A stretch of 64,000 nt of DNA from Oopsacas minuta (lineage: Eukaryota; Animalia; Porifera), in the NCBI GenBank assembly GCA_024704765.1, contig JAKMXF010000321.1, positions 930,001 through 994,000 of the forward strand, given 5' to 3'. Shown here piece by piece: positions 12,520 through 60,102 of this stretch. The notes below the pieces were generated by a model. It made no database searches, had not been told where the DNA came from, and saw only the letters and a program-made list of their open reading frames with translations. Position 1 is the first letter of the stretch, and every line of letters begins with the position of its first letter. The position numbers were made by a program, and so were the translations under genes.

Positions 12520-12593
12520 GGGACTGTCGCTATTTAAAAAACCCAACCCGACTCAGCCATGTCATCCAGTCAAACTGAACCGAAAGCGAATGG

Positions 12594-12715
12594 CAAGGCT
12601 CCCAACTCTCACGATTTCGGGCCTATAATTACTGCAGAATCCCTGGTCTTTTAATAAAAATTAATACTAAATTGTACATCCCACAATTTTGAAGGTTTCC
12701 AGGTTGAGAGCCCTG
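12594..12715. mobile_element. MITE family B, copy 1
   Basis: TIR CA(A/G)GGCTC(C/T)CAAC...GTTGAGAGCCCTG. Inverted homologue at 49512-49627. Flanks GAATGG / TAATGG. Confidence 0.7.
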
Positions 12716-13098: not shown

Positions 13099-14232
13099 CT
13101 ATTTCCTACTACTGTAATTACGAATTATTAAACTTGTATTCAATTCATGTACTTTGATTCTGTAAACAGCATACTTCCTTCTAATTGCTTTGTGAGATAG
13201 TTGGTACAAACTGAATAATGTGGCCAAAAGTATTGGAATCACAATAATGAACATTCCAATAAAGGTAATTATGTTGACTAACGCAAGCGCGTATTTGAGT
13301 ACTGAGTCTAGGAGATGTATTTGTTCTTTTGTCAATGGAGGACTGTACGGCTCTTGCATAATCATGTTCAGTGGGAAAAAACATTTGCCGAAGAAAATGT
13401 AAGATAGGATGATGTCAATAATATTTATTAAACAAACGGAGAAACTAATAAACAGTAATGCTGTATAAACGGTAGTTGAAGTGTATTTGAAGTATCTACA
13501 TTGTTTTAACGCTTCTTTGTTATTTCCGTATTGCGTAAGACATTGTATTGATCTTATATTGAGTGTGACTCTGAATTGTTTCACTGTTTTAACAAAAATA
13601 CCAAAATAGACAGCTGAAGTTAAAATGAATAATATTCTGCCTATATTGAGTAGTGGGTATATACTCGATAGTATAATTATCATGACACATAGTATAACGG
13701 TTGCGAATAAAAACCTTTTATTATTGAAGACTCCATACAGGTATTCTACCTTCTTTATCCTCTTGGTAAGGAAATTCATTAAACAAATTCCCAGAGCAAG
13801 AACAAGTAGAGAGCAACAGTTTGCAAGTGAATCAATAGTATTGAGTAGATCGGTTGAGGATTCAGATATCTCTTCAATATAATGACTGTGTGCATTGCCA
13901 CAATGCTTAACTCTATTGAAAAAATAATGGCGATAATATGAATCAATTCTCCAATAGTGCGCCACCATAAGTTTGATATAATAGAATGTACCAGTGAGGA
14001 ATTCAGCCGTGTTGATTGAGATTAGAAATACAGATTTCCATATTTCAGTCTGATAATGATAGCAAAGCTGCTTGTTAACATATCCAGCATCAGTTTCTGA
14101 TATATTATTCATGGCAATTTTATTGTATTTTATACTATGGCGGATAATTAGTATAAATTTAATCGTCCAATATACACTTAGCAGTAAAGCCATCACAAGA
14201 AGACTACTAGATACAATTATTGTTACTAACAT
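13099..14232 (-). CDS. Orphan seven-transmembrane protein (GPCR-like topology), paralogue 1
   Basis: Intronless. The track starts at a TTG (14268); the first ATG is at 14232. Seven hydrophobic segments, with basic loops after TM1, TM3 and TM5 and a basic C-tail (N-out topology by the positive-inside rule). Paralogous to 47632-48756. No rhodopsin-family motifs (DRY, NPxxY) seen. Confidence 0.85.
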   Translation of the reverse strand: MLVTIIVSSSLLVMALLLSVYWTIKFILIIRHSIKYNKIAMNNISETDAGYVNKQLCYHYQTEIWKSVFLISINTAEFLTGTFYYIKLMVAHYWRIDSYYRHYFFNRVKHCGNAHSHYIEEISESSTDLLNTIDSLANCCSLLVLALGICLMNFLTKRIKKVEYLYGVFNNKRFLFATVILCVMIIILSSIYPLLNIGRILFILTSAVYFGIFVKTVKQFRVTLNIRSIQCLTQYGNNKEALKQCRYFKYTSTTVYTALLFISFSVCLINIIDIILSYIFFGKCFFPLNMIMQEPYSPPLTKEQIHLLDSVLKYALALVNIITFIGMFIIVIPILLATLFSLYQLSHKAIRRKYAVYRIKVHELNTSLIIRNYSSRK

Positions 14233-19500: not shown

Positions 19501-22500
19501 AATCCGATGATAAAACTTCTCAATGCAAGGAAAAGATTATAGAGTTTTTACATGCTAAATCAAAATTAGGTAAACCCTTTAATTGTCAACATCATACTTG
19601 CCAACCCTCCCGGATCCTAGGATTTCACACAGATTCTGTAGTTTACACGGCATTCTAATATTAAAATTTTTTAACAAGGGAAAGTCCGTGGTTTATTATC
19701 AAAAGAATTCAAAATGTTTCAGGGCTTCGGTATCGATGTAGGAAGTATTACTCAATAAACATCATCATACATACTTGCCAACCTTCCCAGGATCCAGGCT
19801 ATCTGACTTGATATCCAGGGAAAATATTTGATACGCGCGCTTTACTTGCTCGCGCTGCGCGGCTTGCGAACACTCTATGTTCGCATGGGACTCGGCGCTT
19901 CGTGTCTCGGATTAACCAAAGTATATAAGTAGCAACATATTCACAATACGTTAGTGACAAATTCATATTTGGAATCAGCTTACCCGATTACGCCAGTATG
20001 ACTATTGAAAGCAAGTTTCTTGGATTAATTCGAAAATTGGATTTATACTCACAAATAAGTGAAGAGAATTTGGCATTATTTCTTGGATTCGTTAAGATCG
20101 TGACGTGGCAACTTGAGGATCTGATCTTGGCCTCCTGGATTGTTGGATGGTGTGTTTTGGGTGGCAATTGTCCGAGGATGTGGCTGTTTGATGCCATTAG
20201 CTATAGGAGAAGAGTTACTGTTGAATGAGTGCATTTATACTCACTTTAAGTGAAGAGAATATGTCATTATTTCTTCGATTCGTTATGATCATGACTATTC
20301 ATCCTATGTTTACATATACACACCCCCTTTTGATATCAATAAAACCAAGCAACAATCTTATTGATTTCGGTAAGATATCCTTTCAGCAAAATACCCTTTC
20401 GGCAAGATATCCTTTCGGCAGGATGTCTTCGGCATAATGTCCGTCGGCTAGATGTCTTTCGGAAAGGTGTCCTAGCACCATATTATATACTCAGATCATC
20501 TTCCCCTATCATTATAATACAAAGTTACAAACAAATAAACAAACAAACAAACAGACCCCCACAATACTTGAGTTTGAATAATATAGATTTCGCGTAATTT
20601 TCTGACAAAACAGTGAAAATTTCATATTATTTGCATATAAAATTAGAAATCTAAGGAAATTTTGAAAATCCCGGGATTTCGAGATAAATATCCAGGAAAT
20701 AATTAGAAAGGGTAGGGAATTATGCAATATACTTCTAATTATTAACGGCGAGTACGATTCGCTTCTAAGTTCGCTATAGGTATATAGCTAAGTTGTTTAA
20801 TACGTCTTTTAATGAAGACGTATTATACGTTTAATCTACAATGACGTAACTTCTATTAGGCTGATTTCTGCAATATATATTTTGCATGAAAACAGAAGTT
20901 CTCGAATTGTTAATGAGAATTATCAGCATAGTTAACCAAATTATATAATACTTGATAATCATGTGACTTATACAAGTCTAAAAATCTCATATTTCGAGAT
21001 GAACCTACACGTATAATAAGTCAAGTAGATCACGTATAACGTATTATACGTTTAATACGTATTATCCGTTATACGCATATTATACAACTTAGGTATATAG
21101 TTTATGGGCACTTTTGTGCCATAAATTATGATATACATACAGTATTGTAAAAAATTTTGATGATTTGATCATCCTGGAGGAAATTGTATGCATAAAGTAG
21201 CAAAAGTGGGATATAGAAAGTTAATTTAAATGTAAATAAATATTTGTTTGTATTGTTTTGGTCCAACTGGTACAAATATCACGCACGCAATAGTTAGAAA
21301 CATTAACCAGGCAATTGTCTGACCATTCTTTGTGTCTCCTGACAGGTCAGACCATTTCCAATTGCCTGACTACTTGTAATTTGTTTCCACCGAGCCTGGT
21401 TGTAATTGACAATGTATCGTCTAGGTAACAACGCACTACATCTCTGTGCTGTTTATGACAAGCCAGATCCGATACGTCCCTTGTTAAGAGCTGGCACGAA
21501 GCTGTCGGAAGGAGATTCGAATCGAAACACCCTTATACATCTAGCAGCTGAGAGAAATAGCGTAGAATACTTCAAGAGAATTGCTATGTACCATAATGTA
21601 GATAGAGCAGCAGATAAGGACGAAGCTCTTAGTAAGTTTAATCACTTAGCTCTAGAATCAAATTGTAAACTTCGACAAACCCGGAACCTGCATAAGCCGA
21701 AATAATTCTATAATCCGACTGTGTTTCTGATCTGATATAGCTTACGGGCTATACAAATTCAACTATATAATCCGACAATTTGCTATACCGGCAAATTTTA
21801 ATGTCCCAACGAGTGTCGGTTTATTCAGGTTCCACTGTATTTATATTGTTGTTTCAGCTCAGCCTAATAATCATCTTTCAGTACATGAATTACTGTTACT
21901 GAAGAATCAACCAGCTATCTTCCATTCGAATAATAACGATAATTACATAGTATTGTAAATATGCATTCTTTCTATTAGGGGAATTTAGAGACTGCTTTCA
22001 GCTTCAAAATAAAGAAAGGAAAATCCCAGTGCTCTTGGCAGAAGATAGACCAATCATTGAAGGAATTCTAAAATACTCTGACATAACTGCAGAAGCTGAT
22101 GAAGATATAGGAAGTCTGATTCATGTTACTGCAGTTTATAATAATATAGGATTAGCTCAGGCATTAGTTAAGAGGAATGTAAAATTGGATGTAGTTAACA
22201 AGATTGGAGTCTCGCCGCTAAAATATGCTGCTAAGAGAGGTAGTGGAGGAGTGCTGAGAATTCTACTTGACAACAAAGCTAATCCCAATTACATAGGAGA
22301 AAAAATTCGGGGCTATACTGCATTGAATATAGCAGTTCAATTCGGGCAGTTTGGTTGTGCTAAGATTTTGATGGATTACGGAGCAGATGTATACAACAGA
22401 GACATGACACACTCAGCATTGCATTCAGCTGCAACGGGAGGACATGCTAAAATAGCTAAGTATTTAATTAAAGTAGCAGGAATGAATGTAAACCAGTTTA

Positions 22501-28579: not shown

Positions 28580-28720
28580 CAGTAAAATCGTGTTTAAAGA
28601 TTATTTAGAGAGTCGAAATGTACATAACTAGACTCAGCTAGCCTAACGGCGTTGAACAAGAGTCATTAGATGGGTTTGGGACGAAATTTGGAAAGGAAAG
28701 TTGTTACATTCCTGAGACAT
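28580..28720 (+). repeat. Unclassified interspersed repeat D, copy 1 (others at about 30140-30290 and 59765-59910)
   Basis: Three same-strand copies share ATAACTAGACTCAGCTAG(C/T)CTA(A/G)C(G/A)GCGT(T/C)GAACAAG...CACATTCC(T)G. Confidence 0.7.
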
Positions 28721-29520: not shown

Positions 29521-31184
29521 AGTAGATACTTGCTCTCAACGGCTACAAAGATGGTTGATCTTACAAATAATTCAATAATATATATTGTTCTAAATATATA
29601 TCTCTATTATAGTACTTAAAGGGGCCGTCAATTTGGAGAATAATGGATACCTCGAGGCGCAATGCGACAAGCCAAAGGCTCGTATCTATAATATCATTTT
29701 GCCTCTATACTCCGCAGGCCCTCTACAGGACCAGGGTTGGCTACGCCAATGTCATAGAAGAAGATAATTAATGGGTTGAAAAAAATGGCCGACAAACTGG
29801 TAGTGCAGCTCAGGGTTACGTATTTTTGTTCTTTTCAGTGGGGGCACGCCCCCTGATTCCCCGTGTATATGCTGCTATACACCAGACATCGACTGATTTT
29901 GGGATCCTGGATCTGACTACACATCATGGCGAATTACAGAATATGTCTCTTACGGATGTTGGATTATCAAAATTCCATTCACTGAGATTCTGAGAACTAT
30001 GTGCATTGTGACAGAGGCACACTGGAAACAGTTTGGCATAATGCACGGAGTTCTCAGTGAATAGAAATATGATAATTATTACAGAATTATGTATCTGTAA
30101 GAAATATGTCAATAAATATTAGCCACTAGGGATAATCCTGTAAATCTTGTTTAATTAAAGATAATTGAGAGTGTCGATAAGTGCATAACTAGACTCAGCT
30201 AGTCTAGCGGCGTCGAACAAGGGGTCACTCAATAGAGTTGGGGCAAAATTTGAGAGTGGAAAGTTGACACATTCCTGCGTTCCTAGGGAAAAAATCTTCC
30301 CAAAATATTCATTGGACCACTTAAACGAGGCGAAATCTCTACTGATTAAAAAGATGAACATAAACATTACGTCGATATGAGCATCTAAAGTGTGAAATGT
30401 GGCTCACAAAACAAAACCATCAAGGGTGCCAATCTAGCGCCGGGCTGTTATTTTATGAATCAGAAACTATTAGTGCTCTTAAAAATCAATTACACCAATC
30501 GAATGTTCCAAAACACAACATTGCTGGCTGGGATGACAGGATTTTGGGGAAATGAATTGATATTCTAAATATTTCGAATTCTGTGAAATTACGTCAAAAT
30601 AAATGGCAAACTTGTGTATGTTCTCAATGAAAATAACCGATATTAAAATATCTTGATCAAACGATTACTCAAAATCTAAAGAAAGATTCAAGATCGTTAA
30701 AACGTAAAATACAAACTTACTCTTGTTGAATTAGCATATCCTTGCATTTCGTGATCTCGAGTTTGAGGAACAAGTTAATTTGATACAAAGTTTGATAATT
30801 AAATTTGAAGACGTGTTGTTATCAAGAGATTTTAGATTACGTAGAACGATAATAATACGTATAAAATATCCAATACTATAACATGCTATTGAAAATAATT
30901 AGGTTTAGGGTTAATAAATCAATAAGTCACTATAAATTATTCAATTAACTAATTAATCAATTAAAACCCTAATTGACTTTGCTATAATAGATCGGATTGT
31001 GTGTGCATTAGAATGGCAGATCGATATCAACTTCATTGTTCATGCTGTAAATTCCTAAAGTTCATCTGCAAACAATTCCATTTCATTAAGGAAATGGTAT
31101 AATAGAAATGTATTAATAAATTTTAGATGAATTCCACGGTATTGTAATGTCAGATTCAGAATATAAGTAAAAACCTTCGACTGT

Positions 31185-32239: not shown

Positions 32240-34606
32240 ATGTACATGATAGATATGAGGGGGCTAAGAGAAGTACTACTCCTCATCTTGCTGAACATCA
32301 CGTGGCTAACATTAGTCAATGGCGTTTGTCAATCTTCAGAACTTAGAAATGGAAGGAGCCGCTGCATAGTCGAGTGTGGTTGGGGACAAAGAGTGTGCGA
32401 GTGTGCTGTTGGATACGAGGAATGCGAATTTACAATGATTGTACAGGAAATGAAGACATTCACTAGTTATCAAGTGCTTGGAGTAAAACCTGACCAAATC
32501 CTAGGGACGGCAGCAAGCGTATACAATCTGGACAATGTCACAGGAGAAGCCATACCGGTGATACAGAATTCTGTTTGCAGCGATTACACAAATACTACAG
32601 AAGTCTTTTGTTTGGAGCCGAACTGGGTAGATGGCAAGAATTATAAAGTGCTGCCATTATTGAATGGTGTGGTTCCAGGTCCGACCATCATCGTGAATGA
32701 AGGATCTACCGTGATTGCACATATAAATAACCAACTAACAAATGATGCGACAAGTATTCATTGGCATGGACTGCTACAGTTCAATACTCCATTCATGGAT
32801 GGAGTAGGAGAAATCACACAATGTCCAATCGAACCAGCAACAACTTTCACTCACGCGTTTATTACCACAGTGCCAGGATCTTATTGGTACCATTCACATA
32901 CTGGTACTCAGAGGGCAGACGGGATATTCGGGGGTTTAGTCGTGAGAGAGAACGGTGATTCAACAACACAAGCAAGGAATGCTTTTGAAAGCTATGGTAT
33001 AGGAACGTTTCTAGATTATCCAGATAGGCACACAATTGTGGTGAGTGATTGGTTCGAAGGGACCAGCTTAAATGATTTCGTTCAATTTGAAGGTGGTTTA
33101 GGATTTCATCCAAGTATTCCAATACAAGATGTGCCAACGAGAAACGATCCCACATTTGAAGAGACCCAGTACTATGATGGTGGAGGTGGAGCGATAATTC
33201 CATTTTATTCCGCACTAATCAACGGATTAGGAAAGCATGAGTCGGTAGCATATGTAGCAAGCAGGTTATCTGAGTTCAGAGTAGAACAAGGGAATATGTA
33301 TAGATTCAGGCTAGTCGGGGCTCAGTCAGAGATACTACTCAGATTTTCGATAGATGGACATAATCTCACTACCATTGCTACGGATGCATACTTTATAGAA
33401 CCCATCGAGGATGTCAATTACATCATATTGCATTCTGGAGAGAGATACGATTTTCTTTTGAACGCCAATGCAGTCATTGGTAATTACATAATGCGATTAG
33501 AAACTATGGAAGCAGACGCTAATTGTTTTAACGATGCGCCATTTGCCTCTCTCAACCATTACACAGAAGCGATCCTCCATTACGAGACTGCAGAATACGA
33601 TAATGGAATACCATCTACGGCATATCAGGCTATAAGTGAAAGCTCTCCGCAGAGGGATTGTACAGTAGGACCTAGATGTAGAGCAGTGAACTGTCCTTTT
33701 GAGAATTTCCATCCTTCTTACGGAATAGATTGCATAAATGTTGGTAGCTTCCAACTCCTGATAGATACACCACCTAGTGAACTACCTGAAGCATATGCGT
33801 CTGACCCCAGTCAACTCTTCTTCTTGAATTTCAACTTTGAAGGGCCTAGCTTTCAAGCTTCAATCAATGGAAGGAGTTTTGTTCTCCCGCCCTACCCACC
33901 TCAAACTAATGATTTGCTGTTCAATGAATATTCAGACGTTTGTAATAATTTTGCAGATTGTAGCATTCATCCTTCTGACCAGTTTAGTTGCGATTGTACA
34001 CACGTTCTTACTTTCGATTTTAATAAAACAGTTCAGATTGTGGTCAGCGCTGTTGGAGAATTTCTTAGCGCACATCCTCTACACATACATGGGCACACCT
34101 ACCATGTAGTGAAGGTAGGATATCCAACGTATTATGAGAACAACGGATATGCAGCGGTTCCTAACCCAGACATTGATTGTGGACAAGGTCCTCAGCAGAC
34201 GACTCAAGCCAGGAGCTGTGGAGCCTATAACTTTTCATGTACAAATCCTTCTTGGAGCGAACCAAGCCCTATTCTGACCATAAACTCGAAAACGCCTCGC
34301 AAAGATGTCATAATTGTACCGACAGGTGGTTACGTGGTTGTCAACCTAATCTCGGATAATCCAGGTTGGTGGTTTGCACATTGCCATATAGAGCCACATC
34401 AACTTAACGGGATGGCTCTGGTAATTAATGAGGCTCCAGGTTATCAGAATCCAGCACCAGAAGAGTTGGTCAATTGTCAGGATTACATATTCAACTCGGA
34501 GGAATTCTATGAACTAATCGCCTTCAACCCGAATCAAGCTGGAACTATCCAAGTCAGCATAATTTTGCTGCTAATGTCGATGCTAGCCTTATTGATAGTT
34601 TTCTAA
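32240..34606 (+). CDS. Laccase-type three-domain multicopper oxidase, secreted, probably GPI-anchored
   Basis: Intronless 788 aa. Signal peptide, N-terminal Cys-rich segment, and all four Cu motifs: HWHG, WYHSH, HPLHIHGH, HCHIEPHQLNGM (Met at the T1 axial position). Hydrophobic C-terminus with no cytoplasmic tail. Confidence 0.95.
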   Translation: MYMIDMRGLREVLLLILLNITWLTLVNGVCQSSELRNGRSRCIVECGWGQRVCECAVGYEECEFTMIVQEMKTFTSYQVLGVKPDQILGTAASVYNLDNVTGEAIPVIQNSVCSDYTNTTEVFCLEPNWVDGKNYKVLPLLNGVVPGPTIIVNEGSTVIAHINNQLTNDATSIHWHGLLQFNTPFMDGVGEITQCPIEPATTFTHAFITTVPGSYWYHSHTGTQRADGIFGGLVVRENGDSTTQARNAFESYGIGTFLDYPDRHTIVVSDWFEGTSLNDFVQFEGGLGFHPSIPIQDVPTRNDPTFEETQYYDGGGGAIIPFYSALINGLGKHESVAYVASRLSEFRVEQGNMYRFRLVGAQSEILLRFSIDGHNLTTIATDAYFIEPIEDVNYIILHSGERYDFLLNANAVIGNYIMRLETMEADANCFNDAPFASLNHYTEAILHYETAEYDNGIPSTAYQAISESSPQRDCTVGPRCRAVNCPFENFHPSYGIDCINVGSFQLLIDTPPSELPEAYASDPSQLFFLNFNFEGPSFQASINGRSFVLPPYPPQTNDLLFNEYSDVCNNFADCSIHPSDQFSCDCTHVLTFDFNKTVQIVVSAVGEFLSAHPLHIHGHTYHVVKVGYPTYYENNGYAAVPNPDIDCGQGPQQTTQARSCGAYNFSCTNPSWSEPSPILTINSKTPRKDVIIVPTGGYVVVNLISDNPGWWFAHCHIEPHQLNGMALVINEAPGYQNPAPEELVNCQDYIFNSEEFYELIAFNPNQAGTIQVSIILLLMSMLALLIVF

Positions 34607-35778: not shown

Positions 35779-35920
35779 AATTATGCCAGAATTATGCCAG
35801 AAAATAACTCAATTTATGCCAGAATTATGCTAGAATTATGCCAGAATTATGCCAGAATTATGCCAGAATTATGCCAGAATTATGCTAGAATTATGTATAA
35901 TTTATGCATGAATTATGCCA
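35779..35920 (+). repeat. 11-bp tandem array (AATTATGCCAG)n
   Basis: About 11 units with CCAG/CTAG variants; degenerate echo at about 36090-36140. Confidence 0.9.
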
Positions 35921-38573
35921 TAAACTAGATTTACGCTAAAGTAAAGTCACACTGGGTACAATTATGAGAGATTTGTTTATTTAGCAATACTGTCAATATG
36001 TGCAAATTGTATATTACCATGTAACAAGCTATACCAGCAGATGTTGATAATAATCATAATATATTATCTAAAACACTATGCAAAATACTAATTATGCTAG
36101 ATATATGCCAGAATATTCATTATGCTATAATTATGCTAGAAAAGCTGTAATGGCAACAATGGGTGGGGAAAGATGATGTCATGCGCACCCCACCCTATAC
36201 TTGTAAATTTTCACTACACAGTGGAAGCCGCTTAATCGAGACAAGTTAGGAGTCAATGTTCCTTCCCAATTAGCTAACATTTGATTCATATGGTATATGT
36301 TATGTCGAATTTGAAGAATCGACATTTAAATATAAATTTTGGAAATTCACCATCTTTAGAGTTCCGAATAATTGGCCCCCGGCTCTCCCCAGATTATTAA
36401 ATTTCAAACATAGACTCGAAATCTTCAATCATCCACATCATTTTACTGGTTGTTTTCATGAACTATCTGGCTTCTATGGAATATCCGTACATCTATTTCA
36501 ATAATGCTTTCGTATGATGTTATAAGATTATGTTATCTACTATCTGATATCAAATCTTAAGAGGATTCTACTACCGTAACATACGTATAACAACTAATGA
36601 ATAATTAACAGTACCACCTCTTAGACAATTTAATTAACGAGTTTCTATATAACCAAAGTTAATATACATTTCAAAGATAAAAGAGCAGGTGGTGTATTGA
36701 TTAAATTATGGCAGATAATGGATAACGCATCATGTCTACATTTGCAAAAAACTACTATTATTTCAAGCCTAAAACAAATGAACTAATAGCAAATAGATAT
36801 ATTTAACATAAGGAATTTATCATTGTTGCAACTGGTGTAAGCCAAATGTGTTTCAAGGAGGGCGTCCCGGGGATTATCATGCCAGGGAGCAAACGCCACT
36901 GGTTTCAGTATTCAATGGGTAATTTGACTGTTAGAGTAATATGTGTTTTTGTGAATCATATTCAGCCTAATTCTGGGGAAAATTTTAAGTTCAGCTTTTG
37001 GCCCGTAAAATTTGAACTTAGTATTGGCTCGTGATAATAATTAGCTCTTCTTTTCTCTGGTTGCCAAATTTCGAATGCTTCTTCACAATGCTCATGATTT
37101 CATTTTTCTGTGTCAAGAGCTTTTTGGTATGTTATATGCTACTCCCAAGATGCGTTATGTAATGTTTGTGTGCAAACTTCTTGAAAATCACCAGGTCGCA
37201 AATGCAACGTTTTTCTCAGTATGTTATGTTTCACAAGTCTGGATTTTCACATTCCACACAACCGTTGTGATAGTGCAAGTATACACCCTGTCTGTAATGG
37301 AAATATACAGAGGTAATGATTTAGAAGGAATGATAAATATTCTGGATAGTGATGAGGATTAGTGATGTTTTCTAGAGGGCAATTATTAACCTCCACACCT
37401 TTTATAACTTCGTTTCAACAATGATAAAAAGGAGATTATTCGCGGAGTGTGGCAGAATCATATCTTCATTCGTTTGGAATCATTATCAAATAACAAAGTA
37501 AGTCAAGTATGCCGTTTCGAATGGCACTGCGCTAATCTGTTCTGATATAGTCTAAAACAGAAAATTCAAAGCAAAAGTCGGCTCGAAATCGGAATCGGAC
37601 TCTACTTACCCAATTACCCCTGACAACCTAATCTCTAAGACGAATTTGAATTTACAAAGAAAGGTGAGAAATCATGATTAATCACCAAAAGGTGTGGATA
37701 ATCACTTTAGAAAAATTCATACCCAAGGAGCATATCTTTGACCCAAAATGTATATGTCCAATTTTAGTGTAAATCTGGGTTTGCATGATCTTTCTTAAGC
37801 CAGGATATTCAAGGGGTTGGAAAATATTTACGTAAACTAAATTCACACAACTCTGGGATCTTAACAGATATATTAGTAGCACAATAATTGCTAATTTAAT
37901 CAGAATATCAGGTAAAACACCCAATGAATTTATTGGCAATATCTTAATCATTACCAGAGGGAAAACACTCGAAGTTATGTATCATGTGACATCTTCTTCA
38001 CCTTCAAGAAAAGCTCTCGGAAATTACAGGAGGCTAGTTGGTCTCTGTAGTAATCTGCTATAGCTTTTTCAAGCTGTTTAGGGTAATTATTACAACAAGC
38101 TCGGTAGTTTTGGCGGTCAATTTCAATCACATATTGTAACCATTTCCATTCATAACGCCGTTTTCTCCGTTAACCATGGTATGTGAGTGCGAAGGGTAAC
38201 CATTCGTACAAATTTTGGTGCATGATTTTCAAGAAGCTCAGATAGAATATTATAATACTGCTCAGTTAGATTATCAAGATCACTTAGAGGATCATCTAAA
38301 ATGGGGACTTTCGAATATCATCCCTGAACAATTCAACTTTATCATTTCGTTATTTCCTGGAGGTATCTAAGACATTTGAAAAGATGGTTTAAATAGTTTT
38401 CTAGATTTTACCTAATTCCCACGAATATCGAGTCAGAGAAAGGATATGTTTTGACAAAACATATGCCATCCATGGTCTGTGTTATAAGTCAGAAACGTGC
38501 GAACTTTGTGATGATAAATTATATATATTTCGTGCAAAAACGACATTAGATCATCTTGTATTTTAATATAATA

Positions 38574-41178: not shown

Positions 41179-44100
41179 CTACTCAAGTGAAGAAGCGAAT
41201 ATCTGCTTAAGGATATTAGGCACATCTCTAGTGTCCATACATACATACGCTTTCCCAACTGGGAGTCTATTCTTTAATATCATCGCCTGGTCTCCTAATG
41301 ATCCAATGAAAATGACGAATGCATTAACTCTTGGCTCGCTCATGAGAACATCTCCATACTCTCCTGCATTAATACCATATCTAGTGAAGTTAGCATCACT
41401 CAGTACTACTAAGTAATTCTGTTCTCCCTCCTGTCTAGCCAGCTCCCTCACAGCTCTCTGAGTAGCCTCTAAGGTAGTATCTCCACTCCAACAGTACTGG
41501 GAGTGAGCTAGCATCTTCTTCAACACCAATAATCTCTCATTCTCATTCGCAGGAACAGAATTATCAGCAACAAACTCTATTCTTGAGTCATCTCCAGAAT
41601 GTCCAGTTATTTCTAGCCGTACTTTCTCTTCAAACCCTTTGAATGCATCCAAAACCATTAACACTGACTCCATACTTCTCTCCATACGTCCATCAATAGA
41701 GTTAAATCTGTACATACTCCCACTCACATCCACAACAAGTCTCATCCGTCTAGCTTCAGTATCAGGTGTTCCAGCCTCCTTCTCCTCTTCTCCTCTCCTC
41801 ACGAACACGTTCCTCTCTCCGCTGATGCTGTCCACCAGCTTGCTATCATCGAGGTCTCCAGTAGTCTGATGTCGTAACCAACCGCGCTCACTGCCTTTGT
41901 TTTGTAAGGCCGTGAGCGTCTCCCTTAGAGCAGTTATCTGTGGCTGAACCTTGCTGAGATACTGTTGATATAGAGTAGCGTCATGACTGCTCATCTCTAT
42001 CTCTTTCATTCTCTCCTTAAAAGCTTTAAGTCCCATCTCTCTAGCAGCCTGCATAACTTCATCGGGAACATTACTTTTTTCTTCATCTGATAGCTGAAAC
42101 ACGTCGTGTCCTGCATCTAGTCTATATGGGCCTCCCTTACCTCCTAGTCCAGCCGTGTCCCTCCCTCCTGTCCCTCCAGCCCAAGTGTTGCCCCCTACAT
42201 GAGGAGCATTCTTTGGATCTACACGCCCGTGCTTAGGGTACTTAACATCCTCACCACTAAACCTCTCTCTACTCACTCGCACTCTATCTCCTGTTCCTAT
42301 CCCCACCATCTCACGCCAAGCAGCAAGAGAGGCCTCCAGAGACCGGGGGGACAGTTCCAGCTGCAACACGTGGCCTAATCTATCTGTTACTATTACGTCA
42401 TCAGTATACGGAGCAGAAGCTAGCAAATAATCAGTTGTATCTTGCAAGTTTAAGTACTTGATTGCATCAAGTTTAGGTAGAGTGTACTCTGTCAGTGTGA
42501 GGTTATCCAGATCAACAGCTTCTAGTGTAGTTTCGTTAATCCCATTATTAGTGGAAATAAGATTAAGAACTGATTTGCTTTGAGACAGAATAGCAGAAGA
42601 AACTGACTCAATAGCAGGAGATGGTCTGTCATGTGTAGATATCGTGTTTCTATTAGTTTTGCATGTGCTGTAGCCAGCATATATGTTTGAATTTGAGCAG
42701 ATTAACTGAGCTGAGTCAGAAGATTGACTGTTAGTACATTTCACGTTGAAAGCAGAATTAATCAATTGAGTATTCGATGGATCAACTGAGTGTATTTTAT
42801 CAGGGAAATAAGAGTTACTGTCTCTATGCGTACATAGAAATGCATTGTTGTCACTAGTAGCTAGCCATTTCTGCTTCTTAAGTTGAATCATATAGTCAAT
42901 AGGGAAGGGGAATTGTTGTCTATGTACTAGCATTGAATCTAAGTCAAAGCAGTACATAATAGAATCTCCCTTAGTATACGAGTATATTCTATTAGCCTCT
43001 GAGCACTCAGCTATGTTAATTTCCTCCTCACTCAGATTAATTCTAAACCTGTTAGCTAAGGTAGAAACAGCTGTCTTTGTCTTTAACCATCTTCCAGAAT
43101 GATTGATAGGATCTAGCCATAACCATGTTTTGGATTCAGACTCGAATAACACTATCTGACCATTGTAAGGTTCACTCAAGGGACATAATTTGAAGTTAGG
43201 ACTCCATCCCTCTCTCCTCGTAGAAGGGTAGCAGAAGAATAGGTCAGATACTAGTAGAGAATCAGATGATAAATGTGTTTTATTATCTTCTATATTAACA
43301 GGCGATTTGTCTGCTAGCTTCATTGTGTAGAGAGTAATAGGGTTATTAGCTATCAGGTGTAAGTATTGACCAGAATTTCCATCTGTAGATGAAGCAATCT
43401 TAATGTTATTAATAGAATTCCTCTGTTCTATAGGTAGAGACCAGGAAGCTACGATCTCTGTGAATCCCTGCCCTCTGTGATAGCTCCTGGCCAGAGGATT
43501 ATTGGAGACAGGGAGAGTGAAGAGAGAGCTGGTTTTGAGAGGAGAGGGTGAAAAAGCTTGTAGAGATTGTTTCTGTTCAGATATAGACCATGTAGAGAAG
43601 TGTCTAGCTGGAGGAAGAGGCGATTGTTTAGCTAACTTCACGTTGCTAGGAGAAGCACCTAGAGGTATGCCGTGTTTGTGTAGAACCTGCATTAGCAGTT
43701 TCTGAGTATCTCTGTCGAAACTGTCAAAATCAAACACATTCCTTACCGCATTAGCTAAGCCTTCTTGAGGGAAAAGAGCGAGATGCTTAGCAATGGCTAC
43801 AGACTCTCTGGTGGAGTACGGGTACCTCAGCGTTCCCTCGTCTGCCATCGTCCTAAGTTCCTGCATCACAGCCAGCAATCTCTTGATTACTTCATTAGAT
43901 AAAGAGGGAGCGTAACTCTTGATTAGAGACAGCTCTGAATTGAAGTCTGGATTATCTACAGCGTGTGTACTGAAGAGATCGCCCATACTAGCGAAAAAGT
44001 TGTTACCCATAAAAGGAAATCCAGGCCTATTAGCCAGCACTATCATTCTAAAATCTGAATGTACAGGAATTCCGTTAGTATCTGTGTTAACAGAGCTAGA

Positions 44101-46566
44101 AGGTAGAATCCGTCTTCCGTCAGGTAGATTAATACCACGCCCCTCTACAAGTCCTTTCAATACAGATGAGACATGTAGAGGAGCTTTATCTGCTTCATCA
44201 ACCACCAGTGTATAGCCCTTTTTCACAGCTTTGACTAGAGGAGAGTCCAAATACTCCAGCCTCCCTTCTCTCAGGACAGGTTGAGTAGTCAGACATTGTA
44301 CTGTACTATCTCTGTGTAGCTGAATATACTCTCTAGGACGAGACAGCCTCTGTAGTAATGTATCAGCTAGTTTGTTTTTACCCACTCCCTGATTTCCAAT
44401 CAGGAGTAAATGCTCTCCAGACAAATAATCAGCTAGCATAGCACTGAGTACTCTCTCTTGCTGCTTATTCTCATAGAACAGTATATCTGGTACTAGAGCT
44501 AGCTCCTCTGTAGTCAGGTTATGTACAGTTCTTACTCTACTCCAGTCGATAGCAGTGTCTGCTACACTACCAGTTGAATGGAGGTTGTGTCTAATCAGCT
44601 GTTCTTCTAGTGTGTTTCTTGCTAGAGGTGTGAGAAACCGGTAGAGACATGCCTTCTTAACTAATTCCAGGAGAGGAGTGTCCGTGTCAACTAATCGCTT
44701 GGCTAGTCTCAACAACTGTCTTGTAGAAAGAGACTGAGCTAAATATTGAGAAGTAACATCATTCTTATTCTCCCTCAGAGAGCTAATTAATTGAATCAGC
44801 TGAGAGAGACTAGTATTTCCTTTTAATTCAGGATAGAGCGTGTGTATTATGCTGAGCTCTATAGCTGGAGTCAGATCGGGTAGAGATTTGATTCTGAACA
44901 TAGCTAGCGCTTCACTACCTAGCCATTTGTTTGGTGTGACTTGAGTGGGAGCAGGTGGCTCACTAATCCCTATGATGCGGAATTGAGGGTGTACTGGATA
45001 AACTCTCTGTTCAGACAAATCACTCTCTGTCAGCTGATTCTCCTTAATCAGTTTGTTATACTGATCAGCTGGTATCAGTCTCGATCCGTCTGGTAGATAT
45101 ACGAATCTGTGAGTGACTAGACTCTGTAAGGAGGCTAAAGTACTTACATCCAGTCTTTGGAGACCATCCAGCACTGCGATGTTCCCTTTAATAGCTGCTT
45201 CTATCAATGGAGCATTCTTCCAGCCTGTGTTACCAGTACCAATATTTGTAACCCTCTGTTGTAGCAGATCTCTAGCAGTCATGTCTCTGTAGCAGAATAT
45301 CTCAGTAGTATCTCTGTTAACACGACGGGATAGGATGTCAACTAGCAGAGACTTACCACTCCCTCTACTGCCTACTACTGCTATATCTCCCATAGTGCAT
45401 AGCCTCTCTAACTCATGTAAAGCTGTAGCATGATACTGTGTCATTACAATGTTGTGCTGTAAGTAAGGTGAGATTACAGTGTCCAGTTGTGTGGTAGGAG
45501 TAGTACGAAGCTGTAGGTTAAATCTCTTAGATAAGGAGGTTACTACTTCTCTCAGCTTAGAGTCATACTGATGGAGAGGGATCAGATAATCTAATGCGCC
45601 TTTATAGCTCATTTTACCAGATTCTACGTCACGTAGCATAGATACTACCTGATGAAATGGAATGTCAATTTTAAGATTAGCTCCGGCGCTAATATTGCTA
45701 ATATCCATTTTGTGTAGTGTGTAGAGGATGGATAGGAAGTTGTTAACTTGATTAGGAGACAGCTGGGAGAGAGTATTAGTTAAAGAGGTAAGAAGTTCCT
45801 GGAATGGAATCTCTGGAATGAGTCTGGCTTGGAACCTGGATCTGAGAGGAGGATCGAGGGAGTGACCCCTGTAGGGTGGAACGGGCAGACCTAGAGCTAT
45901 AACTCTAAAGTTTTCACTGACTCTCTCAAGTCCCATCTCTTTCAACCTACCAGCAGACAGACTTGCTTGTAGCTTGTCAAACCTGTCAGGTGCCAAGAGG
46001 ATCCTACCATCCTCTAGTCGCATCTCTCTGTTCTCGAGTAGATTGTGTATCAGGGGTAGAACATTCCTCTCCGCTCTTTCTATCCCGTCTAGCACAAGTA
46101 TTCTACCTGCCAGTGCTGCTCTCACGGCTGCCTGATCCACATAAATCCCGCTACCGTCTACTATTTCTCTTCTTTGCTTCAGTTCACTTTCAGTAGCGTC
46201 TCTACTCAAACTCAAGTACTCAACTTCCCTACTTGTCAGTTCACAGTATGCCAACGCAACCTCACGCCTAGCAGGACCCGCTCCTCCCACCAAAAACATG
46301 TCTTGTCCTAAGAGGTCTTTCTGCATACACCATCTCAGGTGCTCGGCTAGACTGCCATTGATGAAGCTAACACCTCCAGGAGGGAGGAAGCCAGAAGGTA
46401 CTAAAGAAGGGTTTTTGGGAGGATGGACAAATTTTGAAATGTTACCAATATGGACAACTTCTTGAGAAAATAAGCGATGTTGCTGTCTGGAGTATTGTGT
46501 ACTCCTGAAGTGGGATAAAGCTGTGTTATGACAAGCTAAAGATTTCAAAAGAAAGGAGTTTGCCAT
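41179..46566 (-). CDS. VWA8: von Willebrand factor A domain-containing protein 8 (AAA+ ATPase modules plus VWA)
   Basis: Intronless 1795 aa. Basic/hydroxylated N-terminus resembling a mitochondrial presequence; AAA modules (LVGGAGPARR..VLDGIE; GSRGSGKS..VLDG; GNQGVGKN..VVDEADKAP); the hallmark HVGGNTWAGGTGGRDTAGLGGKGGPYRLDAGH; VWA with MIDAS DVSGSM. Confidence 0.97.
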   Translation of the reverse strand: MANSFLLKSLACHNTALSHFRSTQYSRQQHRLFSQEVVHIGNISKFVHPPKNPSLVPSGFLPPGGVSFINGSLAEHLRWCMQKDLLGQDMFLVGGAGPARREVALAYCELTSREVEYLSLSRDATESELKQRREIVDGSGIYVDQAAVRAALAGRILVLDGIERAERNVLPLIHNLLENREMRLEDGRILLAPDRFDKLQASLSAGRLKEMGLERVSENFRVIALGLPVPPYRGHSLDPPLRSRFQARLIPEIPFQELLTSLTNTLSQLSPNQVNNFLSILYTLHKMDISNISAGANLKIDIPFHQVVSMLRDVESGKMSYKGALDYLIPLHQYDSKLREVVTSLSKRFNLQLRTTPTTQLDTVISPYLQHNIVMTQYHATALHELERLCTMGDIAVVGSRGSGKSLLVDILSRRVNRDTTEIFCYRDMTARDLLQQRVTNIGTGNTGWKNAPLIEAAIKGNIAVLDGLQRLDVSTLASLQSLVTHRFVYLPDGSRLIPADQYNKLIKENQLTESDLSEQRVYPVHPQFRIIGISEPPAPTQVTPNKWLGSEALAMFRIKSLPDLTPAIELSIIHTLYPELKGNTSLSQLIQLISSLRENKNDVTSQYLAQSLSTRQLLRLAKRLVDTDTPLLELVKKACLYRFLTPLARNTLEEQLIRHNLHSTGSVADTAIDWSRVRTVHNLTTEELALVPDILFYENKQQERVLSAMLADYLSGEHLLLIGNQGVGKNKLADTLLQRLSRPREYIQLHRDSTVQCLTTQPVLREGRLEYLDSPLVKAVKKGYTLVVDEADKAPLHVSSVLKGLVEGRGINLPDGRRILPSSSVNTDTNGIPVHSDFRMIVLANRPGFPFMGNNFFASMGDLFSTHAVDNPDFNSELSLIKSYAPSLSNEVIKRLLAVMQELRTMADEGTLRYPYSTRESVAIAKHLALFPQEGLANAVRNVFDFDSFDRDTQKLLMQVLHKHGIPLGASPSNVKLAKQSPLPPARHFSTWSISEQKQSLQAFSPSPLKTSSLFTLPVSNNPLARSYHRGQGFTEIVASWSLPIEQRNSINNIKIASSTDGNSGQYLHLIANNPITLYTMKLADKSPVNIEDNKTHLSSDSLLVSDLFFCYPSTRREGWSPNFKLCPLSEPYNGQIVLFESESKTWLWLDPINHSGRWLKTKTAVSTLANRFRINLSEEEINIAECSEANRIYSYTKGDSIMYCFDLDSMLVHRQQFPFPIDYMIQLKKQKWLATSDNNAFLCTHRDSNSYFPDKIHSVDPSNTQLINSAFNVKCTNSQSSDSAQLICSNSNIYAGYSTCKTNRNTISTHDRPSPAIESVSSAILSQSKSVLNLISTNNGINETTLEAVDLDNLTLTEYTLPKLDAIKYLNLQDTTDYLLASAPYTDDVIVTDRLGHVLQLELSPRSLEASLAAWREMVGIGTGDRVRVSRERFSGEDVKYPKHGRVDPKNAPHVGGNTWAGGTGGRDTAGLGGKGGPYRLDAGHDVFQLSDEEKSNVPDEVMQAAREMGLKAFKERMKEIEMSSHDATLYQQYLSKVQPQITALRETLTALQNKGSERGWLRHQTTGDLDDSKLVDSISGERNVFVRRGEEEKEAGTPDTEARRMRLVVDVSGSMYRFNSIDGRMERSMESVLMVLDAFKGFEEKVRLEITGHSGDDSRIEFVADNSVPANENERLLVLKKMLAHSQYCWSGDTTLEATQRAVRELARQEGEQNYLVVLSDANFTRYGINAGEYGDVLMSEPRVNAFVIFIGSLGDQAMILKNRLPVGKAYVCMDTRDVPNILKQIFASSLE

Positions 46567-47089: not shown

Positions 47090-47410
47090 CTAAGTTGTTT
47101 AATACGTTTTTCAATGAAGACGTATTACGTATTACGTATTACGTATAATACGTATAATACGTTCAATCCACAATTTTGGTGCTGTAAATTCTATTAGGGG
47201 CTAATTTCTGCAATCATTATTTTGCATCAAAACAGTAGTTCTCGAATTGTTAATGAGAAATCTCAGCATAGTTAACCAAATTATGTAATACCATATAATT
47301 ATGTGACTTATACAAGTCTAACAATGCCAAAATCTCATATTTCGAGGTCAACCTACACGTATAATACGTATAATACGTATAATACGGTATAGGCGTATTA
47401 TACAGCTTAG
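47090..47410. mobile_element. MITE family C, copy 2
   Basis: CTAAGTTGTTTAATACG...CGTATTATACAGCTTAG; flanks CTATTAAA / ATATTAAA (7/8). Expanded CGTATTA and CGTATAATA arrays. Confidence 0.8.
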
Positions 47411-47631: not shown

Positions 47632-48756
47632 CTAATGATGAATTATTAAACTTTCATTCAGTTCATGCACTTTTATTCTGTATAAACCTGTCCCTCTAAT
47701 CGCCTTGTAAGCCAGTCTGTACCAACTGTGAAGGGTACACAGTATGAACGGAGAAATCAACATAATTAATCCGAAAACGCCAATAACATTTAATAATATG
47801 TTAAGTGGCTTTAGAATAGATGTTAGTAATGCAATCTGTTTTTCAGTCTTAAGGATCGGATCGTATGCTTCGTATATATCTGAATTGAATGGGAAAAAGC
47901 ATTTACTGAAGAATAGCATACTAATAAATACGTCGATCATATTACCTAGAGCGATGGATAAGATAATAAATAGAAATCCTGTACAAATGGTAGTTGAAGT
48001 GTATTCGAAGTATCTACATTGTTTTAACTCTTCTTTGTTATTTCCGTATTGCGTAAGACATTGTATTGATCTTATATTGAGTGTGACTCTGAATTGTTTC
48101 ACTGTTTTAACAAAAATACCAAAATAGACAGCTGAAGTTAAAATGAATAATATTCTGCCTATATTGAGTAGTGGGTATATACTCGATAGTATAATTATCA
48201 TGACACATAGTATAACGGTTGCGAATAAAAACCTTTTATTGTTGAAGACTCCATACAGGTATTCTACCTTCTTTATCCTCTTGGTAAGGTAATTCATTAA
48301 ACAAATTCCCAGGCAAAATATCAGTATATCTATTGAGTTACCTATGGAATTAATTACATTCATTGTTTCGATGGATGACTGAAATGTTTGTAGGAGAAGT
48401 ATATAAGTATCGTTTACATCTCGACAATTTCCGATTCTGTCAAAATAATAATTTTGATATTCAGAACTTAATGCGAAGTGATCAACAATTAGTTGTTGGA
48501 CAAAGAAACAAACAGCTCTTAATGTCTCAGCACAGTTGATCGAGATAAAGAAAACGTACTTCAAGATTTCAGTTTGATAATGATAGCAATACTGCGCATT
48601 AATGTAACCAGAATTTGTATCCGTTATATTATAAGCTGCCCCTCTCTTGTATATCTTATTCTGATGGATTCTTCGTAGAAATACGATTGTCCAATATAAA
48701 CTCATTGGTAGAAATATGATGATAAAAATAGTAGATAAAATAGTAAAAGTATACAT
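47632..48756 (-). CDS. Orphan seven-transmembrane protein, paralogue 2
   Basis: Intronless 374 aa, seven hydrophobic segments, colinear with 13099-14232 (CYHYQTEI, C-x-FP-x-N and YRIKVHELNxSL shared). Confidence 0.88.
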   Translation of the reverse strand: MYTFTILSTIFIIIFLPMSLYWTIVFLRRIHQNKIYKRGAAYNITDTNSGYINAQYCYHYQTEILKYVFFISINCAETLRAVCFFVQQLIVDHFALSSEYQNYYFDRIGNCRDVNDTYILLLQTFQSSIETMNVINSIGNSIDILIFCLGICLMNYLTKRIKKVEYLYGVFNNKRFLFATVILCVMIIILSSIYPLLNIGRILFILTSAVYFGIFVKTVKQFRVTLNIRSIQCLTQYGNNKEELKQCRYFEYTSTTICTGFLFIILSIALGNMIDVFISMLFFSKCFFPFNSDIYEAYDPILKTEKQIALLTSILKPLNILLNVIGVFGLIMLISPFILCTLHSWYRLAYKAIRGTGLYRIKVHELNESLIIHH

Positions 48757-48803: not shown

Positions 48804-49717
48804 GTTATATTTGTTAGGTCAACAAAATTGATGAAATGTCTAACAGATTTGCTTCTACAAAATTTACTTAAAAGTCTACCAAAATTAGTGAAAATGTCTT
48901 ACCAATTTAATGAAAAAGTCTAACAAAATTAGTCTAACAAATTTGATATATACGCTAAGTAGCTAAGTATGCTAGTTATTTAATTAAGAGGTAGAATATA
49001 ATCTATCTAATGAAATTATTATGCAGTAGGCAGTCGCAAATTGGGGCACGCCTCTCTGATTGAGTTTTTTCGTAAGAAATCACTCGCAAATCGGGCCTCA
49101 ACTATTTTCCAAGCCGCCCGGTTTGCGAGTATTTACTCTACTGTAGCTCTGTAAGTACTGTTCAGATGGATTATTACAGTAAACTCCAGTTATAACCGAG
49201 TCGGATACTGCAAAGAGACAACGCTTATAATGATTTGGTCCAATGGTCCGTAAATCCTTCCATCTAATTACATTATAAAACTTCGTTTATAACAAAATAG
49301 ATGGATGGATACAACTAAACCTGCTTATAACTAAGCTATTTGTTATCCCCTTTAGGTCAAAATCAATTGCATTTCAGCCTGTTATAACGAAGTCCGCTCA
49401 TCACAACCCAGGCTGAACTAATTCCGCTCAAATTGATATTTTATTACATAAAAATTCGTAATTAACGAACTTGGAATAAAGACATTTCATTAATATTGGT
49501 AGAGGCTATTCCAGGGCTCTCAACCTGGAAAGCTTCGAAATCGTGCAATTTAGTATTAGCTTTATATGAAAAGACCTGGGATTCTGCAGTATTTGTAGAC
49601 CCGAAATCATGAGAGTTGAGAGCCCTGCAATTCTGTTAGATATTTACTTAATTTAGTTAGGCATTTTGTCAATTTTGTTAGACATTTCAAGAACTTTGTT
49701 AACCTAATAATTATAAC
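48804..49717. mobile_element. Composite TIR element with subterminal repeats, directly upstream of 7TM paralogue 2
   Basis: Left GTTATATTTGTTAGGTCAACAAA versus right (reverse complement) GTTATAATTATTAGGTTAACAAA. Degenerate GTCTAACAAAATT arrays at 48820-48950 are mirrored at 49640-49700. Contains MITE B and a Tigger-like remnant (about 49178). No TSD found. Confidence 0.5.
49512..49627. mobile_element. MITE family B, copy 2
   Basis: CAGGGCTCTCAAC...GTTGAGAGCCCTG; flanks CTATTC / CAATTC. Confidence 0.75.
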
Positions 49718-59318: not shown

Positions 59319-60102
59319 CCTCCAGTTGGTTAGCCAGTAGCTATTAAACAAAGATAAATGAGGTTACGTTAAATATTTGGAAATCCATAAAATTCTCTTC
59401 TAAATATGTATTACGTACTTACTAGTTATGAATGTAATTTTCAAACCTTGTAACAATTACTTATATGTTAATTTTACCAAAGATTTTGGCTCAAACTTGA
59501 AAACTATGGCAAATAATCAACTCAGGGATTATTTACGTTCCAAGATCTCCAATTAATAACACATGCAAAAATGTATTCTGGGAATTCCAACTATCACATG
59601 TATCCTTTTGAGGCAATCAACCTCTTCCCACTGAATAGAATATGCAATACTGGAAATGAATCAATTTATAACATGTATAAATAAAGAAAACAGACGATAA
59701 ACCGTATATTCATATTAAATATGTAAGAAATATCAGGAAAATTGAGGGACCGCAGAGGTCGATGTAATAAATCGTGTTAACAGATCATTTAGAGGATTGA
59801 TATGTGTATAACTAGACTCAGCTAGCCTAGCAGCGTTGAACAAGGGGAACTCGATGGGGTTAGGATAAGTTTGAGAATGGAATGTGGTCACATTCTGCGT
59901 TGCTAGGGAAAAAACGATGAGTTCGAATATGGCGATATAAAGTCAGTTAGAGTGGATTTCTAATGTTAGTAGCAGGGGGATTGTTGGCGGTTTACTATGG
60001 ACAGCCGAAATGTAAACCGTTATAGCAGATTTTAGATATGCTACTCTACGAAGGATTGCGCTTCTAATGATAATTTTAACATGATCCTAAAGGCCTTTAC
60101 TG

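Follow-up and report, generated by a model that had tools for sequence, protein, structure and literature searches.

Here, we report that two putative receptor genes of the glass sponge Oopsacas minuta, which are old paralogues on one scaffold, share a near-identical stretch of about 324 bp midway through their coding sequences. Judging from the sequences, this stretch was very probably copied from one gene into the other in a single, recent event of interlocus (non-allelic) gene conversion. The genes lie in a contiguous piece of genomic DNA of 64,000 nucleotides, hereafter the window, and positions refer to it unless a scaffold is named. A preliminary description of the window had proposed recent ectopic gene conversion between two diverged genes for seven-transmembrane (7TM) proteins, and had suggested a system that homogenises the signalling side of these receptors while their outer loops diversify. 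The conversion, the 7TM fold and the topology of the tract stood up to analysis, while the homogenising system did not.

Two diverged genes and the tract they share

Gene A (13099-14232, minus strand) is an intronless open reading frame (ORF) that, according to the ORF list and the extracted coding sequence, encodes 377 amino acids from its first ATG; an upstream TTG, chosen as the start by the ORF lister, gives 389 amino acids. Gene B (47632-48756, minus strand) is an intronless ORF of 374 amino acids. The two genes are in direct orientation on a single scaffold (C321) with a separation of 34.5 kb, and between them are four or more unrelated genes, namely ankyrin-repeat, ion-channel and multicopper-oxidase ORFs and an ORF of 1795 amino acids. 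The last of these (41179-46566, minus strand) is uninterrupted, which fits the prevalence of single-exon genes reported for this species, 9872 of 16,340 (PMC10280926; PMC10282587 Table 1). The published assembly of this hexactinellid comprises 61.46 Mb in 365 scaffolds with 36% G+C (PMC10280926; PMC10282587 Table 1), and the assembly searched here holds 61,460,524 bases in 365 contigs.

A dispersed repeat of about 100 nt is present as an inverted pair, with one copy downstream of gene A (12588-12660) and the other upstream of gene B (49561-49633). At least 40 copies, with 79-88% identity, are found on many scaffolds, and the repeat is probably a small non-autonomous element. Being dispersed in this way, the pair beside the two genes was considered unrelated to the conversion and was rejected as a part of it. 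Further dispersed repeats of 127 nt, with 62-89% identity, are located at 20859-20985 and 47199-47325, and at 28585-28711, 30146-30272 and 59769-59895; gene B has one of the copies some 300 nt downstream of it. An intergenic tandem array at 35779-35934 is made of about 14 copies of the 11-nt unit AATTATGCCAG.

The shared tract occupies 13471-13794 in gene A and 47989-48312 in gene B, both on the minus strand and both within the intact ORFs; it was characterised by pairwise alignment, codon tests and a structure model, and corresponds to residues 149-256 of protein B. In a comparison of 13271-13994 with 47789-48512, with the offset fixed at 34518, the tract copies differed at 4 of 324 nt (13488, 13511, 13723 and 13772), which is exactly the number given in the preliminary description and amounts to 98.8% identity (320/324). 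The copies match without a break for at most 211 nt (13512-13722), and they are in frame and in exact register, without indels. The coding sequence on either side is diverged, as had been claimed, with about 58-60% nucleotide identity and with indels; the proteins are 97% identical in the tract, 42% identical outside it and 58% identical overall. The tract edge on the 5' side of the gene (13794/13795) is sharp, with mismatches at all of 13795-13797, and the edge on the 3' side, near 13470, fades over about 25 nt, with mismatches at 13470, 13466, 13460, 13456 and 13453.

There are exactly two copies of the tract DNA in the 61.5-Mb genome, and beyond them the genome search found a single match of 75 nt and 76% identity, in another member of the family. 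A mobile element as the origin of the tract was rejected because of this copy number. An embedded RNA was likewise rejected, as the Rfam search found no family in the tract and its best match (E 0.9) lies outside.

In the codon alignment of A and B, the 108 codons of the tract have a dS of 0.014 and a dN of 0.012, as compared to a dS of 1.42 and a dN of 0.50 in the 5' flank and a dS of 1.78 and a dN of 0.43 in the 3' flank. One of the tract differences is synonymous and three are non-synonymous, the neutral expectation given 253 non-synonymous and 71 synonymous sites. The same codon is used at 102 of the 103 conserved degenerate codons of the tract, as compared to 40.8 expected at saturation (P=6e-40), where the expectation was set from the codon usage of the family, and most segments of the flanks are at this saturated level. 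A GENECONV-like permutation test of run length was performed on 888 ungapped polymorphic sites in the seven full-length family members (21 pairs, 2000 shuffles). A and B share a run of 163 matching polymorphic sites, a length that none of the 2000 shuffles reached, while the remaining 20 of the 21 pairs had no significant run after correction. By these codon and permutation tests, chance is excluded as the source of the identity.

An old duplication and a recent exchange

Separate trees of the flanks and of the tract are incongruent, with A and B split by the former and joined by the latter. In the flank tree (269 columns), A groups with P0008, P0011 and P0014 (support 100/99) and B with P0001-P0004 (support 94/92); forcing an A+B clade on the flanks costs 40.8 log-likelihood units and is rejected (p-AU 0.00015). 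In the tract tree (108 columns, 97% amino acid identity), A and B are sisters with a support of 89/89. The protein AU test on the tract, which has these 108 columns only, did not reject the flank topology, and given the short protein tract it is the DNA data that decide the incongruence. Since the flanks are saturated and separate while the tract copies are sisters, the genes duplicated long ago and exchanged the tract recently. In addition, the flanks of A and B belong with different groups of orthologues, so the duplication precedes the split of O. minuta from the species that carry both types. The claim of a recent ectopic conversion is therefore borne out by the dS contrast, the codon and permutation tests and the incongruent trees.

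Both the N-terminal and the C-terminal flank of A are nearer to the A-type orthologues, and both flanks of B are nearer to the B-type ones. As each gene keeps its own orthology on both sides of the tract, each is a mosaic with two breakpoints. This pattern is the hallmark of gene conversion rather than of a crossover or an error in joining scaffolds. P0001 and P0008 are each located on a 655,076-bp contig, probably the same one, so linkage of the A and B types may extend to that species. In other species, A-type and B-type proteins have 52-62% amino acid identity in the tract region as compared to 27-34% in the flanks; by this comparison, conservation is about twice as high in the tract region as in the flanks even in the absence of conversion. 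A homogenised tract was not found in these A-type/B-type pairs of other species.

For the direction of the exchange, the protein identity of the tract is 72-77% to B-type orthologues and 60-69% to A-type orthologues. Strict diagnostic columns include five that are B-like and two that are A-like, the relaxed diagnostic set includes nine and eight, respectively, and the sole derived state that is polarised by an outgroup is A-type. The two donor placements were not told apart by AU tests. For trees or dN/dS estimates in this family, residues 149-256 of B should be masked, since with the tract left in, A and B would pass for recent duplicates.

An orphan 7TM family and the position of the tract on the protein

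A six-frame search of the genome found 15 family matches, of which about seven are full-length and intact and others are fragments; members are located on scaffolds C321, C88, C336, C348 and C166. Public protein data contain 14 close homologues, all of them ENA predictions, and among 1.84 billion cluster representatives searched with a profile, 158 matched at E<=0.001, nearly all of which are 340-400 amino acids long or fragments. Pfam has no match for A or B, for 19 members (E<=1) or for 10 distant members, and a search of PDB sequences with the family profile returned nothing at E<=10. The class A motifs DRY, CWxP and NPxxY are absent from the family; the end of TM3 reads NYLTKR in place of DRY, and TM7 reads SPFILCT in place of NPxxY. 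Weak ESM Atlas leads pointed to THH1/TOM1/TOM3 or GPR137_N (scores 0.88-0.92), and these identities were rejected with recognition below threshold.

The AlphaFold2 model of B, built from a 19-sequence alignment (pLDDT 81.4, pTM 0.78), contains seven long helices, and ECL1, the first outer loop, adds two short ones. In VIA-align, which is independent of Foldseek, all of the 50 best chains are GPCRs (Z 13.1-15.3), with about 250 residues aligned at an rmsd of about 4.3 A and residues 1-350 spanned; helical bundles often reach a Z of about 13-14, so these matches show resemblance only at the level of the fold. Foldseek matches are weak (best E 0.024), and all of them are GPCRs. The putative inner loops and tail carry 20 lysine and arginine residues as compared to 4 in the outer loops, and an N-x-S/T sequon is found in ECL1 in most members of the family alignment; both features support an N-out/C-in orientation. 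The earlier designation of the proteins as 7TM thus holds at the fold level, with seven helices in the model and GPCRs as the best structural matches. Judged by the predicted structure, this orphan family has a GPCR-like 7TM fold, and it falls outside every known GPCR sequence family; the present case helps to define it through this fold, the lack of a Pfam link and the 158 cluster representatives.

Partial copies of family members were also observed. On C336, an inverted copy of the 5' part of L004 (223837-224898) is located just upstream of it as L010 (222129-222410), with 88% identity over 361 nt. On C88, an 807-nt copy of the 5' part of L003, with 82% identity, lies about 33 kb off (L003 and L009), and stretches with 90-94% identity are present nearby. 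As far as these sequences indicate, the family turns over by local partial duplication.

In the model, the tract includes the cytoplasmic end of TM3, ICL2, TM4, ECL2, TM5, ICL3 and the cytoplasmic half of TM6, and ECL2 contributes about three residues. The preliminary description had it begin at the end of TM3 and finish at the start of TM6, and this agrees with the helices of the model and with the positive-inside rule. In all family pairs, sliding nucleotide identity has two peaks, one covering the end of TM3 and ICL2 and the other ICL3 and the start of TM6, and it is lowest in ECL1, TM4-TM5 and ECL3. Conservation within the family is strongest in two blocks, one at the cytoplasmic end of TM3 (CLMNYLTKRIKK) and one where TM6 begins (YF.YTS), and the tract has one end in each, so local homology explains its position without any need for selection. 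In other words, the tract spans the cytoplasmic loops because nucleotide homology between the copies is highest at its ends.

The conversion may have proceeded from a break in one copy, which would have been repaired from the other copy as template, through synthesis-dependent strand annealing or another pathway of this kind without crossover. Heteroduplex would have formed and been resolved where the copies are most alike, and TM4 and TM5 in between would have been carried along. The four differences in the tract may be later changes or unrepaired patches of heteroduplex. The flank identity of about 58% counts against this reading, as it offers little homology for starting recombination. Initiation might be accounted for if the core was already more similar at that time, possibly as a result of earlier conversions, or if short conserved blocks are enough.

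Other explanations and comparison with known systems

The suggested alternative, that recurrent or selected homogenisation maintains the cytoplasmic, G-protein-facing core as a shared signalling module while ECL1 and ECL3 diversify, appears quite unlikely. The tract does take in ICL2 and ICL3 and leave out ECL1 and ECL3, and a first conversion at about 60% identity is hard to start, which hints at earlier exchanges. However, the tract also takes in TM4 and TM5, which form no coupling surface and show little conservation among family members; non-synonymous and synonymous differences stand at a neutral ratio of 3:1; and the G-protein coupling of the family is itself putative. O. minuta encodes 8 G-alpha subunits (PMC10280926). 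Nor is a receptor-diversification system supported: only one of the 21 pairs has a significant tract, A/B pairs of other species are not homogenised, and no donor cassettes or extra module copies were found in the 61.5-Mb genome. A survey for further tracts in the family by all-against-all blastn, sliding identity, 40-codon same-codon windows and permutation yielded none that survived correction.

Two weak hints of earlier exchange bear on this question. The first, with a weaker signal than that of the tract, is in the cytoplasmic C-tail, where A at 13123-13164 (minus strand; YRIKVHELNTSLII) has 88% nucleotide identity to its counterpart in B at 47641-47682 (minus strand; YRIKVHELNESLII). In the last 30 codons (358-387), A and B use the same codon at 13 of 19 positions (P=0.009), and the motif YRIKVHELN.SLII in the C-tail of A carries residues derived in the B-type lineage. 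The similarity of these segments may reflect an older, short exchange from B to A. The second is in the ICL3 region, which contains the best same-codon window of several distant pairs. For example, L004 and L007, which are on different scaffolds, share 21 of 25 conserved degenerate codons in codons 231-270 of the family alignment, from ICL3 into the beginning of TM6, as compared to 10.7 expected, with P=3e-5 that is uncorrected and becomes borderline after about 2000 overlapping tests. Their nucleotide identity in these codons is 79-87%, as compared to 54% overall. Such a pattern could come from an old conversion or from constraint at the nucleotide level, and the ICL3 signal may also reflect a larger number of conserved residues in this region, which gives the test more power there.

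Both hints are on the cytoplasmic side of the protein. We therefore keep in view, as an improbable but not negligible possibility, that the cytoplasmic core (ICL2-ICL3, and perhaps the C-tail) is in concerted evolution through repeated conversion while the extracellular loops diverge freely. If this were true, the paralogues would share a signalling module and differ in sensing, a sponge parallel to CCR2/CCR5.

An artefact of assembly or polishing, in which mis-resolved repeats, Pilon, or GapFiller with reads from the paralogue made the tract, is very unlikely. The assembly was derived from pooled non-clonal specimens and was built with SPAdes (k up to 99; Illumina and corrected PacBio reads) followed by SSPACE, Pilon and GapFiller, all of which leaves some room for such an error (PMC10280926). 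However, neither de Bruijn nor long-read assembly has a route by which regions of about 60% identity would be made identical, and each of the four junctions between flank and tract requires real k-mers. No indel separates the copies, which keep the reading frame and align in exact register, yet they retain four differences. A mis-join would have swapped flanks or rearranged the intervening 34.5 kb, while flank orthology is intact in both genes, and coverage is 186x (PMC10280926). Purifying selection alone, acting on the protein or on some RNA or DNA element embedded in the tract, is scarcely conceivable and is effectively refuted by the synonymous-site data: although the proteins of the family are most conserved in the tract region, synonymous sites are identical also (dS 0.014 as compared to more than 1.4; 102 of 103 codons the same), so selection at the protein level cannot account for the tract, A-type and B-type orthologues are just 52-62% identical there, and no Rfam family matches it.

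A single recent gene conversion between A and B has close parallels in other animals. Gene conversion is known between the linked GPCR paralogues CCR2/CCR5 and CCR1/CCR3, chiefly over transmembrane regions (PMC2880985). Like these mammalian pairs, A and B are paralogues with a GPCR-type fold and an intronless coding sequence, located tens of kilobases apart on one chromosome; the homogenised tracts are short and lie mainly over transmembrane segments while the rest is diverged, and they were found through incongruence between tract and flanks. In contrast to the CCR pairs, the sponge family is an orphan without a sequence link to class A receptors, and its host is a glass sponge. As compared to CCR2/CCR5, there is one clear tract, and the sponge flanks are far more diverged, with dS saturated.

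In olfactory-receptor clusters and in the L/M opsin genes, non-allelic conversion also yields mosaic 7TM genes within multigene families. Those families form large tandem arrays with frequent events, while O. minuta has about seven intact members on several scaffolds. Templated segmental replacement in a surface-protein gene is performed by the immunoglobulin pseudogene donors of chicken, the trypanosome VSG genes and Neisseria pilin. Unlike such cassette systems, A and B have no donor arrays, the tract has two copies, both partners are intact conserved genes, and the part exchanged is the conserved core instead of the variable exposed part. The present case is therefore outside the programmed kind of cassette conversion.

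With saturated flanks, a tract of 98.8% identity, a duplication dated by orthologues to before a species split and unrelated genes in between, A and B provide a clean, textbook-quality case of interlocus conversion in a non-bilaterian animal. The mechanism is not new; what the case adds to a familiar process is a new example from a sponge and from an orphan family.
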